The translations under genes and the position numbers were made by a program. Below are positions 46,560-54,946 of a DNA stretch of 64,000 nt, piece after piece. The stretch comes from Monocercomonoides exilis PA203 (Eukaryota > Protista > Preaxostyla), in assembly GCA_001643675.2 (NCBI GenBank), contig LSRY02000042.1, positions 496,001-560,000 on the forward strand, given 5' to 3'. Under the pieces are notes generated by a model. That model was not told the origin of the DNA, did not search any database, and saw only the letters and a list, made by a program, of their open reading frames with translations. Every line of letters starts with the position of its first letter. Positions within the stretch are counted from its first letter, which is position 1.

Positions 46560-48247
46560 GAGACAAAGTTTTATGTTTTATGAATTTTGTTCCACTCTAC
46601 ACTTTCATATACAACTCTCAATTTTAAATTTTTTTGTATTTTTTAGAATTGTAATGAAAATTTTGCAATGATATAATTGCAGTATAAGTTTGCAACAAAC
46701 CTCTATTTTTTTATAATTGCAAAAATTTTGTCCCATTTGAGTGCATTCTCACAAGTCTGAGAAGTCAAGCGTTTTAAACTTTCATGAACCTTTTTATCAA
46801 TAACTTTAATAAAATAAACTTTCAAAGAAAATGAAATTTATTTACAAAGACAAAAAGCTGATTACCGAAAATTTTCAAATTCATTTCAGATATATTGTTA
46901 AAAAGAAAAAAAAGCAAAATAAATCATTGTCGTCAGTATTCGTTCCATTCAGTTTGCTCCTATCTTTTTGCATCCTCAAAATGATCTATCTGAAGTAAAG
47001 CAAGCTGAATGATGCAAGAAAGCAACAATTTTACATCGTTAGTGCATATAAAGGACAATTGGAAGATTTATATCTGTTGTTAAATTGATTAAAAATAGGG
47101 CTATAATTTTATCTTGACCTTTTTTCTATATCACGACCTTTTTCTTTTTTGCCATGCGCTCTGCTTTATGCAAGCAATTAGCAAATAAAAAATAACCAGA
47201 AATGTTTGAAATGTTTTAATTTCCTAATTCTGTATTTTTTTGTCAATATTTCATGTTTTGCAAAAAGATCGAGGATTATAATAATTTTATGTTTTGATCA
47301 TTGACTTACCACTTTTCCAGCGAATATTTTTCACTAGAAGTTTGAAGCTTTCATATCATAATACATTATTTCTTTTTTTTTACAAGTTGAACTTGTTTTA
47401 AACTTTTTCAACTTGTTTTTTTTTTTTCATTTTTTCTCAGTTCACACATTTTTCAAAAAAACATGATTTTCGAATTAAATGAACTTTTGTTTTTTTATTC
47501 TTTGAAGTAAAATAAAAACAAATCTGTAATGAAATTTTATATTAAAGAAAAAACAACGAAACATTTATCAATGGCAAACATTTATCATATCAAAATTTTC
47601 ATATTTTCTACTATTTCGTATTAAATTCTTATTCAATTCTTTTTCATTTCAAAATTAAACAAAAATATATATAATAAGAAACTCCCAGTTTTAATTTCAT
47701 TTATCCTTAAAAATAATGCACATTCATATTTATTCCGAAAAACGTGTTTTTGTTGAAACAGTGAAATGAGAAAAAAAAGCAAAAAATTAAATTAAAAAAA
47801 TAAAAACAAGTTATTATAATAATATAGGAATGTTGTATTAAGATGTTGAGGATAAAAACGTTGTGTATGAAATATTCGCTTCACTGCCAGCAAGTCTTTA
47901 ATCTATGTCCTACAATAAAAAAAAAAAAAAAAAATTGAATATTTTTTTGAAAATTAAAATTTCAAAATTTTTTTCAACAGAATTCTGAAAAAATAAAAAT
48001 AAGGGGGAAAATATGAACTTTCAAGCTTTTTGTGTACAAAGCATGAAAAAATAGTTTCACTTTTAACATTATTAAACTTTATCAGATTTCAAAATAAATT
48101 GGATTTTCATTGCTGCAAACAAACATCATTGATAAAATTACAAAATGTTTTGTGAACTCACATATATTTCTAATCATAAACCCATTTATTTCAATTTTTT
48201 AATCACAAAAAAGTCAATGAAAAGTGCATAATTTTTCAATGAAAATG

Positions 48248-50668
48248 GGCATAGGTCTAAATTGTACCAGTAGCGAATTTGACGTTTTTTAATTATATTT
48301 CACTGTATTATTAATAAACGTAATTAATTAACTCTATATTATCGAGAAAATCTATGAAATTTAACTTTGAAAAACAATAATAAAAATTAATGATCGGACC
48401 CATTAAATATTTATATATTTTTCCTTTTTTGTTTTTGGGGTGTAATGGAGAAATTTAGTTGTTATCAGCAAAGATAATGATTGTCAAACATATAATTCTT
48501 TGTATATCTATTATTTATTTAAATTGATATGTGTAATATTTTTCGTAATCAAAATCTATTCGAAATATGATTCTTGCTTTATGATATAGAATTTTTGTCT
48601 GAAGCGAAACATCCGTTGAATTGAATTCTTTATTTTGGCATTAGAGGAATGGATCAAAAACAAATTTTACAAATTATTCAGTTTCAGATGGAATAACAAA
48701 TGGAGGAGCGATTTACATGCAAAGCCTGGGTTCGGGAACACTTTCAGTGAAATTTTGTTCGTTCAACAACTGCACTGCATATTATGCTGGGGGAGGAATT
48801 TTGTGTGTTTCAATCAATTCTATCAAGATCGAAAATAACTCATTCAATGCATGCACTGCTCAAAAAGATGAAGGAGGAGAGATTATGGCTTATCCGTTTC
48901 AGGAGTGTGTCAGGATCAGTGGTTGAGAATTTTTAAAATACAAAGCAGATAGAATAGGAGGAGGGCCTTATCTTAATTCTTTTCAGGTTTCAAGTTCTGG
49001 ATGTATCGGAGCAGAAAGTGGGAAAGGGGAGAGTGCTTGTGTGTTTGAATGCTCATTTACTTCTTTCTCACTAGCAAGAAATTTTGGTGGAGGATTGAAT
49101 TGCTCATATATTCCAGTCACATTGAAAATGAGGAGAATACAGTTCATTTCATGTTCAACAGTATCACATGGCCGAGGACCGTACTTTTACACCTTTCAAC
49201 AAACAACTCCAAGCTACAGCGTTTATTGCTATTTTTTATTCTTTCATGAATGCAAATGCTCTGCAGCCACTCCATATGGGCGTGATGTGATGTATTATAA
49301 TCGATATAATGTTTTTAAGTCTTCAAACAATCCGTTCGATGAATGCTACACAACAAACGCAGATGACCAGAGAGTGTGCTACAGATATTGGACAAGTGAC
49401 TGGGCATATCAGCTCACGGACAAGAAGGAGTGGCTGAACGAATGGACAAAGGTTCTGTTTGTGGGGGTAAATGGAAGCGACTCGAGTGGGCTGTGTGGAA
49501 TGGGCGAGTCGGCTCCATGCCAGACGGTGGGGCATGCAGTGGAGACGGGCTTGGAAGAGCTGAGCTCATCAGTCACACTGATGGGCGGTTATCACACAAG
49601 CGAGACAGCAACGATTGAGATTGGAACAAAGAAGATTTCAGTCATTGGGAAAGGGAGGACAAAGAGTTCGATCGAAACAGGAGCCCTTTCATTATCAGGT
49701 GCGCTGTTCAGTGTGTCAGCAGGTCATCTTGGAATGAATCATTTGAAAGTCGATTGTAACTCAAATATAAATCCTTCGCCGAGCGTGGTTGTGGTGTCTG
49801 ATGGGGGTGGGTCACTCTCATTGGAGGATGTTGTGATCACCACGAGTAAAACAGGAGACTATGTGATATTGTCGTCAGTGTTTGTGGTGGCGCTGTCGCA
49901 GCTGTCGATGGTTGATGTGGAGATCATAAATATGAATGTCTCAAAATCATTGTTCTCTGAGCCGAATCAATCTTCTTCTTCATTATCGTCATCTGCACTG
50001 TATCTGACAGCCACAGCATCAGGAGATAGCGAGCTGGCGAATGTGAAGGTGACAAATGTGAAGTTGACTGAAGGAGATGGGGTGGTTGTGGCAAAGAGTG
50101 TGAAGGCTGGAAAGATATTTACTGTTCAGTATGTGACTATTGACGATTGAAGGTGTGTGAATGGCAGTGGTGGAGGGATCAAGGTTGAGTTGGAAACTGA
50201 TTCAAGAATATTTTGCACTGGAACATCCACATCGCAAGATGGAGAACAATGAAGGTTTGCAGATGAATTTTTCTCAATTAAATTGCAATGTTTTTCAAAC
50301 GGTTTTTATTAAAAATTTTTTATTCTATGCATTCTTTTCAAAATGCGCAGAATGTTTATATAAAAAAAAAGAAAACAAAACATAAACCAGTCCATTCTTT
50401 TTGATTAGAAGTCATGCAAAAACAGAAAAACAAGACAATTGCAAAATTTTATATTCAAAATATAGAGCGAATAAGTACATAAAACAAAAAAGGAAAAATA
50501 TATAAATATTTAATGGGTCCGATCATTAATTTTTATTATTGTTTTTCAAAGTTAAATTTCATAGATTTTCTCGATAATATAGAGTTAATTAATTACGTTT
50601 ATTAATAATACAGTGAAATATAATTAAAAAACGTCAAATTCGCTACTGGTACAATTTAGACCTATGCC
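48248..50668. mobile_element. Non-autonomous TIR DNA transposon carrying a host gene fragment (Pack-MULE-like)
   Basis: Identical 188-bp TIRs (48248-48435, 50481-50668) with GGC...GCC termini; 8-bp direct repeat TGAAAATG at 48240-48247 and 50669-50676; no transposase inside. Confidence 0.9.
48648..50252 (+). pseudogene. Captured fragment of a GGA/GGG-repeat (beta-helix, POMP-like) surface-protein gene
   Basis: One frame: GGAIYM...FCSFNNCTA..GGGI...ISG*EF...FGGGLNC...LFVGVNGSDSSGLCGMGESAPCQTVGHAVE...TIDD*RCVNGSGGGIKVELE; TGA at 48924-48926 and 50148-50150; no signal peptide or TM anchor. Confidence 0.75.
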
Positions 50669-51775
50669 TGAAAATGCCTGAAGTGAAATATTTTGTCCCA
50701 TATCAAGAAGTCTCTTTCTTTTGTTTTTGCTTTTAACCTTTTCACAAATCTAAAAAGGAAAAACAAGTATCAAAAATAGGGTTGAGATTATTTTTTGAGT
50801 TCAAGATAAAATATGTTCCCTATTCAATGTTGTGCATTAGTCTATTCTTTCGGTTCCGCTGTGTTCACCTCTTCATCGCTTGCAGCATCAGTGGTGAAAT
50901 TAGTTGGTAAGCAGATTTTTTCTGCAGCTTCGGATGTGAATTCGCTCCCATCAGCCAACGATCAACTTGACCCATTGCAGCTGCCGTTTTTCGATTGTGA
51001 AGCTTGTGTCGCAATCGCTGCACCAGAGGAATGTGATGGAGAAGCTGAAAAACGAAATGATGGAGTGAGAGCTGTGGCGTGTGAAGCAGGGGGGATTGGA
51101 GAGAAGAGTTTCGAGGTGTAAGAGCTGAGGATGGAGGATGCAGTTCTATCGGATGAAGCTATGCGTTTGCCGTTCTGAAAGAGTGAGAAGAGAAGAAGAA
51201 ATTGAGATGTGGAGGAAAATAAAAAAAGTGGAAGAGGTGATAGTTGATGGACAGGTTACAGAAGGAGCATAATCAAGGTTTGACTGTGAGGAGAAAAAGA
51301 TAAAGTGGAGGAGGAGGAAGAAGAAGTTTCGAATGAATAAGGAAAAATAAAAGAAAGGGAAGAAAGGGAAGAAGACAAAGAAGAGACGAAAGAAGAGACG
51401 AAAGAGCAATGAATAGAAAATTTAAAAAGAGAAAAAGAATGAGAGAGAAAAAGATTTGAATTTGTCGAAGACTGATACGAAATATGGGCATTCTTCTTGC
51501 TTGAACAATGAAGAATCCAACAAGATGAAGAGATGTTACATGTTCTTGTTAACTTTTTTGTTAGATTTTTTTTTCAATAAAAAAGATTTTTTTCAGTTTT
51601 CTTTTCTTTATAATCAGTCATTTTCGGATTTATAAAAAGTTCTTATTTTTCATTGAACAATCAAATTTTTTCCATTAACTTTCGTTTCAAGATTTTTTTA
51701 AGAATATGTTATCAATTTTCATTTTATACAAATATTGATCAAAATTAAAATTTGAAAAAAGTGTTTTTTTTAAGA

Positions 51776-54700
51776 ATGTTTTGGGGATTAATTCTTTTCC
51801 AAATTGTAATATCGATTTACTCGCTAGACGATCCATCACAGCCAATTACAACAGTATTTGTCAAGCAAAGCGGGAACAATAGCAACAATGGATTGGATAT
51901 TGGCCAGGAAAGGCAATCTTTGTTATTGGCATACATTCTTCTGAGCAATGAAGCTGTTTGCAACATAAAATTTGTTGAAGATGAAAATCCATTTCCTGCG
52001 GAAGTCTTGACAGCTAACAAAAAGACAAAAATTACACTTGAAGGATGGAAAAGTGATGGAAGTGGGAACGCCGAAGTGGAAATAGACTGTGAAGTGCATG
52101 AAGGTTTAGTTCTATTTAATTGCTATTGCGATGCGGAATTCAAATGGTTGGCATTTCACATTCCAACAACATTGGATAAAAAAGGAGTTGAAAAATTTGG
52201 ACCATTATCTTTGATAAACGCACAACGTACAAGCTTGACAATAAGCAACTGTAGATTTATTCGGCCAGCAGGGGGAAGCGTGGTTGATTATAGACTTGTT
52301 GATGCAAATGGTGGATCGTTGACGATGGAATCAGTTGAATGCGCAGATGAAGAAAATACATTTTCAACGATGAGAGAAGTGTTTTTTGCAAGTGATTGCG
52401 AAACGGTGATATTGTCCAATTTGAATTTGAAGAAAATTGATATAGTTCGTCCAAACGAAAAGATTTTTGCAGAAGCCGTTGTTGATGTCTATAGTTACAG
52501 CACAGACATCAAAACTGATCTTACATTGAAAGGGAGCACATTTTCGGAGATAAAAAGCGCAAGCATGGTATTTGTATTTAAAACTTATAACAAAGATAGT
52601 ACATTTACTGTTGGAGATGGAGGTGTCACAACATTTTCGTCATGCCATACTGATTATCAATATGGCTCTGGGGTATTATGTCTACGAATGACTGCTATTA
52701 CATCAGTAAGTCAGATTAAATGGCCCGAAGATGGGAGGAATCTGATATTTGACAAATGCACATTCGGAGCAGGTAAGTCAAAAAGAAGCACTGGACTATT
52801 ATTGATAATGGCGAATGACTCATTATTTGAAGACCTCGCAGCAGAAATGAAGAAAAGTTTTGCAGCTAATTATAACAGAAGAGATAATTTGTGGAATATT
52901 GTTGGGACCGACAACAATATGATATATGAATGTGATTTTGTGTCCACGTATTATGATCCCCCTCTTTCAAAGCCAGAAAACATGACAAAGGCCTTCGTAA
53001 AGAATGGAGGAAAAGGAAATGGAATCAGTGTTGAATTAGCAGCCTACAGTTTAAAGGATGCATACAACTTTTTAGAAAAGAGTGTGAAATGCATCATCGA
53101 AACTGTCAAAACAGAAGATCCTCTTCCAGCTGAAGCTATCACATTTGATGTTGGCAACGGAATAATTATTGAAGGAGTTAACAGTGACGGAAAGGGAAAC
53201 GCAGAAGTTGCTATCGATTGTGATGTTAGCGCATCATCTGCTTTATTTACATGTGAAAAAGAGGTTGAATTCAAGTCTTTGGCATTTAACTTTCCCACTT
53301 CTGGGAAAAAATGGGATTCTTTAATTTTTGGAAATGAATTGTCAACGTCGCTTTCCATCAGCAATTGCCGATTTGTCAGAATTGGAGCACAATCATCAAC
53401 AGGTGGAGGAATTGGCACCTGTGTTGATGGAGACGGTTCTGTTGCAGGCAATCTTGTGAAGGTTGTAAGTGGGAAAGTTACATTGAACAATGTTTCATGT
53501 GCAGATGATTCAATTTGTGTTTCGTTTTCGATTTCGCCATTTTATTTTGAAGGGGTCAATGAAATTTCGTTGAATGGAGTAGAAGTGAGCAATGTGAATG
53601 TCCAAAATGGAGCAGCGATTACAATTGAAGATGGAGAAAGCACACCTACAACAGTAAGCATTGAAGGGCTGAGCATGAAGGAGGTGAACTCAGAGAATGG
53701 AGACGTGGCTGGCTTGGAGATTTCTTTGGTTTCGGAAGAATCAACAGTTGCGATTGGAAGAAACGACAAATGCTCATTCAAATCTTGTTCAGCACCGAAT
53801 GGGAAAGTTGGGGCAATATTCATTGAGATGCCAAAGGCAGCATCGAACATTCAGCTTCCCGCAGCAAACAATCTGGAGATAGACAGCTCAAACACAGCTG
53901 GCTCGCAATCATCTTCTCTGTTCATCATTGCGCCAGATTTTGATGAGTTCTGCAAAAGAGAAGATGCATTTGAGTTTGCGAATGATTATGGCAATTCAAC
54001 AGCTGGGTGGATTGCGGGAGCAAAAGATGAAGAATCAGAGCCAGAAGATGCGTATGAAAAGTATTTGAAAGAGCAAAAAGATAAGCCGAAGGAAGATGAG
54101 TCAAAAGAAGAGAAGGAATCAGAAGGAAGAGAAGGAAATGGAGAAGAAAAGAAGCCATTTGCTTGGTGGATTATTGTGATTGTTGTTGGAGTTGTGGCAG
54201 TTGTGGCAGTTGTTTGTGTCATTTTGATTGTGACGACGACGAAGAAGAGGAAGAAGAAGACATTCTCAAAGAAGCAGCAGATACTTGTGGAGGAGGAAGA
54301 AGATGGATATGAAGGAAAAGAAGGAGGAGAAGAAGAAAGAGAAAGAGAAAGAGAAAGAGAAGAAGGGGAAAACAAAATAGCAAAGAATCGAGTGAAAGAA
54401 GATAATTCGAATTCAAACGAAAATGCATCTTTCATTCAACATTTGAACAATACAACACACGAAAATAACAAATCTAACAGACATTTACAGAAAGATGAAA
54501 GAAAAGAAGGAATAAGCAGTGAATTCATTGAAGAAGCTGTGAATCAGATTTTGTCTTCTTCTTCTTCTGTGTTGAATGAAGAAGAATTACAAGCAAACAA
54601 AATGAATGCGAATTTGAAAGAATTTGTGACAGAAGCAAACACATTTTCATTGCAATCAAACAAACAAAATGAAGAAACAAGAATGAAAGATGAAGAAATC

Positions 54701-54946
54701 AATGAAAATGAATATGAAGAAGAAGAAGAAAGAGAGAAAGAGAAGAAGAAAGGGAAAAAAAGAAAGAAAGCGAAAAAATCAACACATTTAAAAGAGAATG
54801 ATGAATTGGAAAGTGAAAAAGAAGAAGAAGAGAAGGAAGAAAATGAAGAAGAAGAAGAAGAAAAGCAGGAAAAAAAGAAGAAGAAAAAGAAAAAGAAGAA
54901 GAAATCAAAGAAGAATGAAGGAAATGAGGAGGAAGAAGAAAAATGA
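51776..54946 (+). CDS. Type I membrane/surface protein with two ~375-aa beta-rich repeats, TM helix and highly charged cytoplasmic tail
   Basis: Signal peptide MFWGLILFQIVISIYS; repeats begin VFVKQSG (~51855) and AFVKNGG (~52991) and share EG..SDG.GNAEV.IDC.V, EFK.LAF..PT and SL.ISNCRF.R; TM WWIIVIVVGVVAVVAVVCVILIV followed by KKRKKK. Confidence 0.8.
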   Translation: MFWGLILFQIVISIYSLDDPSQPITTVFVKQSGNNSNNGLDIGQERQSLLLAYILLSNEAVCNIKFVEDENPFPAEVLTANKKTKITLEGWKSDGSGNAEVEIDCEVHEGLVLFNCYCDAEFKWLAFHIPTTLDKKGVEKFGPLSLINAQRTSLTISNCRFIRPAGGSVVDYRLVDANGGSLTMESVECADEENTFSTMREVFFASDCETVILSNLNLKKIDIVRPNEKIFAEAVVDVYSYSTDIKTDLTLKGSTFSEIKSASMVFVFKTYNKDSTFTVGDGGVTTFSSCHTDYQYGSGVLCLRMTAITSVSQIKWPEDGRNLIFDKCTFGAGKSKRSTGLLLIMANDSLFEDLAAEMKKSFAANYNRRDNLWNIVGTDNNMIYECDFVSTYYDPPLSKPENMTKAFVKNGGKGNGISVELAAYSLKDAYNFLEKSVKCIIETVKTEDPLPAEAITFDVGNGIIIEGVNSDGKGNAEVAIDCDVSASSALFTCEKEVEFKSLAFNFPTSGKKWDSLIFGNELSTSLSISNCRFVRIGAQSSTGGGIGTCVDGDGSVAGNLVKVVSGKVTLNNVSCADDSICVSFSISPFYFEGVNEISLNGVEVSNVNVQNGAAITIEDGESTPTTVSIEGLSMKEVNSENGDVAGLEISLVSEESTVAIGRNDKCSFKSCSAPNGKVGAIFIEMPKAASNIQLPAANNLEIDSSNTAGSQSSSLFIIAPDFDEFCKREDAFEFANDYGNSTAGWIAGAKDEESEPEDAYEKYLKEQKDKPKEDESKEEKESEGREGNGEEKKPFAWWIIVIVVGVVAVVAVVCVILIVTTTKKRKKKTFSKKQQILVEEEEDGYEGKEGGEEEREREREREEGENKIAKNRVKEDNSNSNENASFIQHLNNTTHENNKSNRHLQKDERKEGISSEFIEEAVNQILSSSSSVLNEEELQANKMNANLKEFVTEANTFSLQSNKQNEETRMKDEEINENEYEEEEEREKEKKKGKKRKKAKKSTHLKENDELESEKEEEEKEENEEEEEEKQEKKKKKKKKKKKSKKNEGNEEEEEK

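Follow-up and report, generated by a model that had tools for sequence, protein, structure and literature searches.

What kind of mobile element has brought a piece of a surface-protein gene to this locus of the protist Monocercomonoides exilis PA203, and what has become of that piece since it was taken up? The window, by which we mean the whole 64,000-nucleotide stretch analyzed (contig LSRY02000042.1, positions 496,001 to 560,000), contains at 48240-50676 an insertion that a sequence-only reading had described as a recently moved, Pack-MULE-like transposon with a captured gene fragment. Here we show that this insertion, which we refer to as W, is a real mobile DNA element that has no transposase of its own and carries a piece of a surface-protein gene. 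It belongs, as a non-autonomous element, to the Merlin superfamily and not to Mutator. Merlin itself has been published from this organism, although the gene-carrying forms are unpublished in the literature that we searched.

The element is about 2.4 kb long, with termini GGC...GCC that read GGCATAGG...CCTATGCC and an exact flanking 8-bp duplication. Its two long arms mirror each other perfectly, and a search for transposase remnants returned no similarity at E<=10 beyond noise. The arms, the ends, the duplication and the missing transposase were all part of the earlier description and are confirmed on the sequence of W. The parts of the element and of its target are the following.

47990..48247, resuming at 50669-50710, unstranded: target, an unrelated and very abundant dispersed repeat, recognized from its genome copies and uninterrupted paralogs
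48240..48247, unstranded: left copy of the target-site duplication TGAAAATG; the octamer is single in uninterrupted paralogous target repeats
48248..48435, plus strand: left arm (terminal inverted repeat) of 188 nt, beginning GGCATAGGTCTAAATTGTACCAG; pairs with the right arm at 100% complementarity and is homologous to the arms of the larger element L052
48436..48623, plus strand: 5′ subterminal backbone, AT-rich and non-coding; kept among sister copies and without homology to the parent gene
48624..50258, plus strand: cargo, 1,635 bp in one frame, with TGA at 48924 and 50148; matches parent residues 256-807
50259..50480, plus strand: 3′ subterminal backbone, likewise AT-rich and non-coding; identity to the four closest copies 94-99%
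50481..50668, minus strand: right terminal inverted repeat, 188 nt; 100% complementary to the left arm
50669..50676, unstranded: right copy of the target-site duplication TGAAAATG, single in uninterrupted target repeats as for the left copy

As had been noted, two stops interrupt the single frame of the cargo of roughly 1.6 kb (TGA at 48924-48926 and 50148-50150), though in a nanopore-based assembly (PMC8767320) an individual stop or frameshift could be an error. The sequence preceding the cargo, previously called intron-like, proves to be 188 bp of element backbone conserved in sister copies, with 90-97% identity to the four closest copies and 75-79% to L035, L039 and L040; in the remaining copies the 5′ backbone cannot be aligned with that of W. 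Nor does this stretch represent a parental intron: in the one parent paralog examined on this point, on contig C91, the open frame continues without a break through the whole region.

Searching the genome with the arms, pairing the hits and tabulating the duplications revealed at least 23 full-length copies of 2.3-2.6 kb that are homologous to one another over their whole length. Perfect 8-bp duplications, differing in sequence from copy to copy, flank 17 of these 23, the duplications of 2 further copies are explained by inversion between neighboring copies, and related families likewise make 8-bp duplications. Nearly all copies have termini reading GGCATAGGTCT... Genome-wide there are 144 occurrences of the 23-nt end motif and 0 of the reversed control, which, together with the pairing of ends with 8-bp duplications, places the structure far beyond chance. 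Three copies that are 99-100% identical sit in unrelated flanks. Two pairs of hits, L048/L050 and L049/L051, had been considered as solo arms or as ends of longer autonomous elements and are truncated copies of the 2.4-kb family.

The insertion can also be seen from its absence. The target repeat of W has at least 1,223 first-look candidates genome-wide, the best of them 83-89% identical, and three paralogous copies of it run unbroken across the insertion point with the octamer present once. Given a nanopore-based assembly, one might suspect an artefact, or else a resident gene bracketed by two independent insertions. Either is vanishingly improbable, considering these empty sites, the recurrence of ends, backbone and cargo together at no fewer than 23 loci spread over many contigs, each with an 8-bp duplication of its own, and the unrelatedness of the cargo to the genes that flank W; the neighboring gene for a 1,064-residue membrane protein shows no BLAST similarity to it. 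The central claim of the sequence-only reading, a non-autonomous transposon with terminal inverted repeats and part of a surface-protein gene of its host, is supported.

The assignment to Merlin comes from transposase-bearing relatives, for which a search had been proposed. Elements of 6.9-8.4 kb that code for Merlin transposases, in one case an intact one, share their ends with W. The 7.8-kb element L052 (arms 168 nt, duplication CATTTTTT) is identical to W in its first 23 nt, and 104-181 nt of the arms align at 70-76%. A reading frame in its relative L053 scores 38 bits on PF12762 (DDE_Tnp_IS1595, Merlin; cut-off 27), and the C10 copy of the transposase-bearing family has a nearly whole transposase. 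The closest transposase-bearing relatives (three copies, 7.8-8.4 kb) have transposase genes broken by stop codons; a more distant one, on contig C40 (arms 208 nt, duplication CACAAGAA), retains an intact open frame of 518 residues that scores 56.5 bits on PF12762 against the same cut-off of 27. Neither L052 nor C40 has nested or inner inverted repeats, and hence the transposase belongs to the outer element. With an internal-deletion origin in mind, we also compared the short family with the 7.8-kb family and found no backbone similarity beyond the arms; the only cargo stretch common to both is a region conserved across the entire gene family.

Merlin elements as published have GG ends and 8-9-bp duplications, and more than 100 Merlin copies with 8-bp duplications have been reported from Monocercomonoides sp. 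PA203 (PMC8101967). The W family shows 5′-GG arm starts, a duplication of 8 bp and ends homologous to those of elements coding for DDE_Tnp_IS1595. Long arms, G-starting ends and a duplication at the edge of the Mutator-like range would also suit a Pack-MULE, that is, a non-autonomous Mutator-like element moved by a MULE transposase. That reading is nevertheless extremely unlikely: the 82-Mb genome yields no candidate for the MULE transposase domain PF10551 at E<=1e-5 and at least 575 candidates for PF12762, the arms of W have homologs that flank genes for Merlin transposases, and its GG ends and 8-bp duplication match the published Merlin description (PMC8101967). The label MULE-like is therefore wrong, and Merlin, formerly a side option, takes its place. 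Duplications of 8 bp are made by hAT elements too, but the arms of W are tied directly to Merlin-coding elements. Being without a transposase, W must be moved in trans, as had been proposed on the same ground, probably by a Merlin transposase that recognizes the common ends; the three near-identical copies at unrelated sites lend this circumstantial support.

The cargo aligns with residues 256-807 in a family of membrane proteins that are about 2,850-3,100 residues long and have hundreds of genomic copies; a first look at the genome gives about 1,800 candidates for this family. At the protein level it is 60-71% identical to more than 100 scored paralogs, whose open frames span 2,700-3,700 residues. 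The search for an intact parent gene succeeded in part. It yielded the uninterrupted paralog C91, which matches the cargo of W at 74% nucleotide identity over 1,543 nt and encodes a protein with a membrane span at the C terminus and with a cytoplasmic tail; it yielded no unique parent, the best non-element paralogs reaching 69-71% in protein and 74% in DNA. The capture is old and the cargo mosaic. The age of the capture follows from the breakpoints of the cargo, which are identical in all family copies, at 23 loci or more, and indicate a single old event after which the fragment moved to new loci with the element. There was accordingly no fresh capture at W. No Pfam family scored above its cut-off on the cargo, on a 502-residue open frame of the copy L034 or on a 2,905-residue parent, and the GGx-repeat region reached 18.2 bits on Beta_helix, below the cut-off of 25.9. 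An AlphaFold model of the parent region has a mean pLDDT of 45.6 and regular short strands at residues 30-190; with this low-confidence model, Foldseek gave no match at E<=0.001, and its weak matches are mostly to beta-helix enzymes and tailspikes.

Since its capture the cargo has diverged far more than the sequence around it. Sister copies differ from one another by 1.9-6.9% in their backbone and by 10-23% in their cargo (Fisher p 1e-10 to 1e-41), and the cargo has terminal branches about 10 times as long as those of the backbone. W and L032 have a Ks of 0.26 against a backbone divergence of about 2.7%; for W and L031 the Ks is 0.42 against 1.9% over 786 non-coding nt. The transposase-bearing family follows the same trend, with backbone and transposase 89-93% identical and cargo 80.5%. 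The pattern of these differences is mosaic: divergent blocks are specific to a pair of copies and differ from pair to pair, with switches of topology, 39% of the informative pairs of sites fail the four-gamete test, and the significance in a PHI-type permutation is p<0.001. In the cargo tree, host genes are interspersed among element cargos. For a 300-nt patch specific to W the best match is a non-element paralog at 87%; the four closest siblings are all missing from the 40 best matches, and where aligned the siblings reach about 45-83% per 60-nt window. For a second, 200-nt patch the best matches are again non-element paralogs (84-87%), with the siblings L031 and L032 at 81%.

From this mosaic we infer recombination of the cargo with genomic paralogs. 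No donor at least 95% identical was found for either the 300-nt or the 200-nt patch, so that recombination is recognized from patterns rather than caught directly, and short tracts from many donors, or donors since lost, have to be assumed. The idea that the cargo takes part in shuffling sequence with the surface-protein family is supported.

One might instead suppose that selection for transposition conserves the backbone while the cargo drifts neutrally and never recombines with paralogs. Arms and subterminal regions bind the transposase, and some constraint on them is to be expected. Drift would, however, require near-complete constraint on the 786 non-coding nt, which cannot even be aligned between subfamilies, and it accounts poorly for differences clustered in pair-specific blocks with topology switches, for a Ka/Ks of 0.4-0.5 rather than 1 among the cargo differences and for host genes nested among the element cargos. 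Transitions make up 51-56% of the mutations, a mixed spectrum that rules out deaminase-like hypermutation of the GC-richer cargo as well. We regard neutral drift as very unlikely.

The arms behave differently from the cargo. Within one copy the two arms are 92.6-100% alike, whereas between subfamilies arms are merely 71-84% alike, which points to homogenization of the arms inside each lineage. The three clearly recent movers, the copies that are 99-100% identical, have arms just 92.7% alike. Recent movement of W, previously deduced from its pristine arms, is hence not established, as the two arms of each copy co-evolve and the closest sibling of W is just 88% identical overall. More generally, where arms are homogenized, neither perfect long arms nor perfect duplications date an insertion well.

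Taken together, the evidence argues for a Merlin family with one old capture, mobilization in trans, recombination between cargo and paralogs, and homogenization of arms within each copy, a history to which we assign a probability of roughly 80%. W would belong to a Merlin clade in which all ends start GGCATAGGT, 8-bp target duplications are made and movement is by cut and paste. The ancestor of the family would have taken up, once, an internal fragment of about 1.65 kb of a giant multi-copy gene for a type-I membrane (surface) protein, and the element would then have spread to the present 23 or more full-length copies while diverging into subfamilies. Recombination with hundreds of paralogs, by gene conversion or by template switching in the repair of excision gaps and presumably in the direction from host gene to element, would make the cargo turn over 3-10 times faster than the backbone and render it mosaic, and homogenization within each copy would keep both arms alike.

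The cargo might alternatively be a long-standing accessory module, retained for the benefit of the element rather than a passive host fragment; possible benefits are a homology handle for repair, camouflage against silencing or an expressed protein. In its favor, fragments of 4.4-5.1 kb from one and the same gene family, arranged in an identical convergent layout, occur in two Merlin lineages with no more than 46-49% identity between their transposases. Moreover, the short copies stay within 2.31-2.45 kb in all 23 cases except C41 (2,582 bp), although their arms diverge by up to 29%, and Ka/Ks is below 1. Set against this are the several stops and frameshifts in the cargo of most copies, the lack of the parent's N-terminus and membrane anchor in the fragments, and fragment limits that vary among the three element types (residues 256-807, 661-2352 and 816-2278); a Ka/Ks below 1 would be expected anyway if the differences were imported from selected host genes. 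We consider a retained module improbable. Also unlikely, if a little less so, is that the elements of this clade are mobile recombination cassettes that exchange tracts with chromosomal genes of the giant surface-protein family in both directions, so that transposition and gene conversion together make the variable N-terminal region of that family diversify and spread. Were this true, it would resemble the silent cassette archives behind surface variation in some parasites, with an archive that is itself mobile.

Documented cases of systematic gene capture by cut-and-paste transposons come almost exclusively from plants, and for Merlin we found none in the literature searched. Here a Merlin clade, with or without transposase, carries kilobase pieces of what looks like the largest surface-protein family of its host. 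Such elements can account in a concrete way for some of the 35% of the Monocercomonoides exilis genome classed as "unclassified repeat" (PMC8767320) and for gene models that are transposon cargo, and they provide a natural system in which transposition and gene conversion may jointly shuffle a surface-protein family.

Among the nearest known systems are the Merlin families F1-F7 of Monocercomonoides sp. PA203 (PMC8101967), which are alike in their GG ends, their 8-bp duplications without consensus, their many diverged families within one genome and their DDE_Tnp_IS1595 transposases, as in the autonomous-type relatives of W. They bear transposases between arms of 23-29 bp, whereas the W clade has arms of 168-208 nt and W has no transposase; and, unlike F1-F7 as described, the W clade holds 1.6-5.1 kb of host gene-family sequence in its short as well as its transposase-bearing forms. 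The terms "non-autonomous" and "MITE" are absent from that paper, and "capture" occurs solely in a cited title. The right-end motif of the W clade is present in its supplementary contigs, so transposase-bearing relatives of W were probably sampled there. Host coding fragments inside non-plant transposons, as in W, are also described in the accounts of Turmoil-1 of C. elegans and of transduplication by fungal DNA transposons (PMC2572040, PMC3538342); there the superfamilies are other than that of W and, in Turmoil-1, unlike W, the fragments lie inside the inverted repeats.

Another parallel is with the Pack-TYPE elements of plants (Pack-MULE, Pack-CACTA and Pack-hAT/PIF/Mariner), non-autonomous elements with terminal inverted repeats and target-site duplications that spread host coding fragments by transduplication and for which acquisition of DNA by gap repair with template switching has been proposed (PMC8903248, PMC6379663). 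Like them, W has no transposase, holds a host gene fragment between its arms and has moved that fragment to new loci. Pack-TYPE elements are described as plant elements (PMC8903248, PMC6379663), whereas W is a Merlin element in a metamonad protist; they comprise many unique captures, whereas the family of W is uniform and descends from one old capture. In the W clade, moreover, transposase-bearing relatives carry cargo as well, and after capture the cargo appears to go on recombining with a huge family of paralogs.

The 2.4-kb element in the window (48248-50668; hereafter the window copy) begins and ends with GGCATAGG...CCTATGCC and is flanked on both sides by the 8-bp sequence TGAAAATG. Its parts are as follows.

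48248-48435: left arm, 188 nt, 100% complementary to the right arm
48624-50258: cargo, a 1,635-bp surface-protein gene fragment
48645-50249: single cargo frame, with internal TGA stops at 48924 and 50148
50481-50668: right arm, 188 nt, 100% complementary to the left arm

The arms, ends, duplication and two cargo stops described by the sequence-only reading are all present in the window. The 188-bp stretch separating left arm and cargo, which it had called intron-like, is not an intron and belongs to the element backbone, that is, the arms together with the AT-rich non-coding subterminal regions flanking the cargo. Joined through one TGAAAATG, the flanks give a continuous alignment to each of three paralogs of an abundant dispersed repeat. 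These empty-site paralogs rule out both an artefact and two insertions around a resident gene. The host repeat (~250 bp; window 47990-48247 and 50669-50710) is very abundant, with at least 1,223 first-look candidates in the genome, the best of them 83-89% identical. It frequently occurs as inverted pairs 0.4-2.2 kb apart and is therefore probably the long arm of another transposon family. Downstream of the element, at a distance of 1.1 kb, is an open frame of 1,064 residues (51752-54946) that contains two internal repeats and a membrane span and has a highly charged tail; it showed no BLAST similarity to the family of the cargo and no Pfam domain above cut-off.

Searching the arm against its own genome (82.3 Mb, 101 contigs) gave 40 scored matches, mainly inverted pairs 2.3-2.45 kb apart. 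With up to 3 mismatches allowed, the 23-nt start of the arm is present at 144 sites, compared with 0 for its reversed control. Pairing inverted matches and tabulating duplications, the check proposed from the sequence, showed that paired elements with 8-bp duplications do recur. All 18 further full-length copies extracted align end to end to the window copy at 64-88% identity, and this short family has at least 23 full-length members, a count that takes in four copies examined at their ends only, plus truncated ones. Seventeen copies carry a perfect direct 8-bp duplication, different in sequence in each. Three copies (L045-L047) are 99-100% identical to one another in unrelated flanks, so the short family has transposed recently.

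Two short-family copies lie 2.2 kb apart with swapped flanks (L039:1001-7848; contig C9:702423-709270), the left flanks being mutual reverse complements and the right flanks likewise (7/8 bases); this is the signature expected of inversion by recombination between two inverted copies. Both ends of another copy (L038:1000-3399; contig C20:278130-280529) start with A rather than G, and in place of a direct duplication this copy is flanked by sequences that are each other's reverse complement over at least 11 nt. Merlin transposase genes of other families, at C27:196137-196634 and C25:26572-26985, lie ~1 kb from copies L035 and L045 and suggest transposon-rich neighbourhoods.

The superfamily is revealed by larger elements of 7.8-8.4 kb with the identical first 23 nt (L052 on contig C21, L053 on C69 and a third on C10). 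In L052 the two 168-nt arms match each other at 99% and share 70-76% identity with short-family arms over 104-181 nt; its 8-bp duplication is CATTTTTT, and no inner inverted repeat was found in it. Inside these elements lies a decayed transposase gene, whose longest open piece scores 38 bits on DDE_Tnp_IS1595 (PF12762; cut-off 27) and which in the C10 element is almost whole, interrupted by two or three stops. C40 carries a more distant relative (ends GGCATAGGTGT..., 6,874 bp, 208-nt arms, duplication CACAAGAA) that contains an intact 518-residue transposase frame scoring 56.5 bits on PF12762. The Merlin transposases of this clade (L055:328-1881 on contig C40, and L056) have a long C-terminal extension past the DDE domain, of ~230 residues and rich in acidic runs and KKRKRK motifs. 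The search for a transposase-encoding copy yielded Merlin transposases in end-sharing elements. Profile searches of the genome returned at least 575 candidates for PF12762 but not one for the MULE domain PF10551. In the published description, Merlin is recognised by GG ends and duplications of 8-9 bp (PMC8101967). The label "MULE-like" has to be given up, since the ends are common to Merlin-encoding elements and PF10551 has no candidate; the short family consists of genuine non-autonomous, gene-carrying Merlin transposons, not Mutator elements. The 2.4-kb copies retain no trace of a transposase, so they are non-autonomous and must be moved in trans.

Arms within one copy are 92.6-100% alike, against 71-84% between subfamilies. 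Such an excess of likeness within copies is unreachable without homogenisation, so the two arms co-evolve within each copy, implying conversion between the arms of one element. Perfect arms do not date an insertion, because those of the recently active L045-L047 trio are only 92.7% alike. The pristine arms consequently lose their force as evidence that the window copy moved recently, and no sibling exceeds 88% overall identity to it; a recent move is possible.

More than 100 scored genomic paralogs share 55-71% identity with the 369-residue open frame of the cargo, among 1,781 first-look candidates whose open frames are mostly 2,700-3,700 residues long. The open frame of one paralog, on C91, spans 2,905 residues and includes a membrane span at the C-terminal end plus a charged tail. 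Residues 256-807 of this paralog are the part represented in the cargo, with identical limits in every family copy, which indicates a single ancestral capture of an internal gene fragment. The cargo repeat region may well fold as a beta-helix. Transposase-bearing relatives hold other, longer pieces of the same gene family (residues 661-2352 in L052, 816-2278 in C40), convergent with the transposase gene in both.

The cargo is a mosaic with a far quicker turnover than the backbone. Compared with its closest relatives, the window copy is 93-98% identical in arms and subterminal regions and 77-85% in the cargo. Among the five closest copies, the cargo diverges more than the backbone in each of the 10 pairs (10-23% against 1.9-6.9%; Fisher p 1e-10 to 1e-41), and the excess sits in blocks whose position varies from pair to pair. 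For the window copy and L032, similarity is 97-98% at element positions 661-840 and 50-63% at 1141-1320; for L033 and L034 it is 92-100% as far as position 1140 and 59-63% right after; for L036 and L038 it is 93-100% in most windows, with milder dips besides the two deepest drops (52-63% at 421-660, 67-77% at 1681-1800). Different siblings are nearest in different parts of the cargo. Of the informative site pairs, 39% violate the four-gamete test; a PHI-type permutation yields p<0.001. Local decay or hypermutation as the source of these differences is countered by their Ka/Ks of 0.4-0.5 and mixed mutation spectrum; they look imported from sequences evolved under selection.

Two cargo patches specific to the window copy have their best matches in paralogs outside elements. 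One, of 300 nt, matches at 87% on C80, where the matching sequences are truncated N-terminal gene copies that lack element ends, and its 40 best matches include none of the four closest siblings; the other, of 200 nt, matches C42 and C41 at 84-87%, whereas siblings L031 and L032 reach 81%. In the giant family, truncated N-terminal copies with frames of 500-820 residues form large arrays in which they lie as inverted pairs (L057; C80:1327000-1333500), with many further hits at C80:1.15-1.70 Mb, on C42 and on C71. The array copies on C80, C42 and C71 lack GGCATAGGT ends, and patches of the window cargo find their best matches in them. In a cargo-region tree, the three host sequences included scatter among element cargos, and terminal branches are ~10x longer than in the backbone tree. 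The 7.8-kb family behaves likewise, with 80.5% identity in the cargo and 89-93% in the backbone and transposase. These patterns lead us to conclude that the cargo recombines with genomic paralogs, through either gene conversion or template switching when excision gaps are repaired. A near-identical donor was sought for the two patches and none was found, so the individual events, tract lengths and direction are inferred.

The nanopore assembly of Monocercomonoides exilis PA203 is 46% repeat and 35% "unclassified" (PMC8767320). Merlin is reported in this species with more than 100 copies, seven families, 8-bp duplications and 23-29-bp arms, and non-autonomous or gene-carrying forms are not mentioned (PMC8101967); the right-end motif of the window copy's clade is present in the supplementary contigs of that study. 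A full-text literature search returned no paper linking Merlin and gene capture. As we read these elements, their unexpected and well-supported feature is that the cargo continues to recombine with a giant surface-protein gene family. Pack-TYPE elements are described from plants in their papers, whereas the gene-carrying Merlin elements reported here come from a protist.
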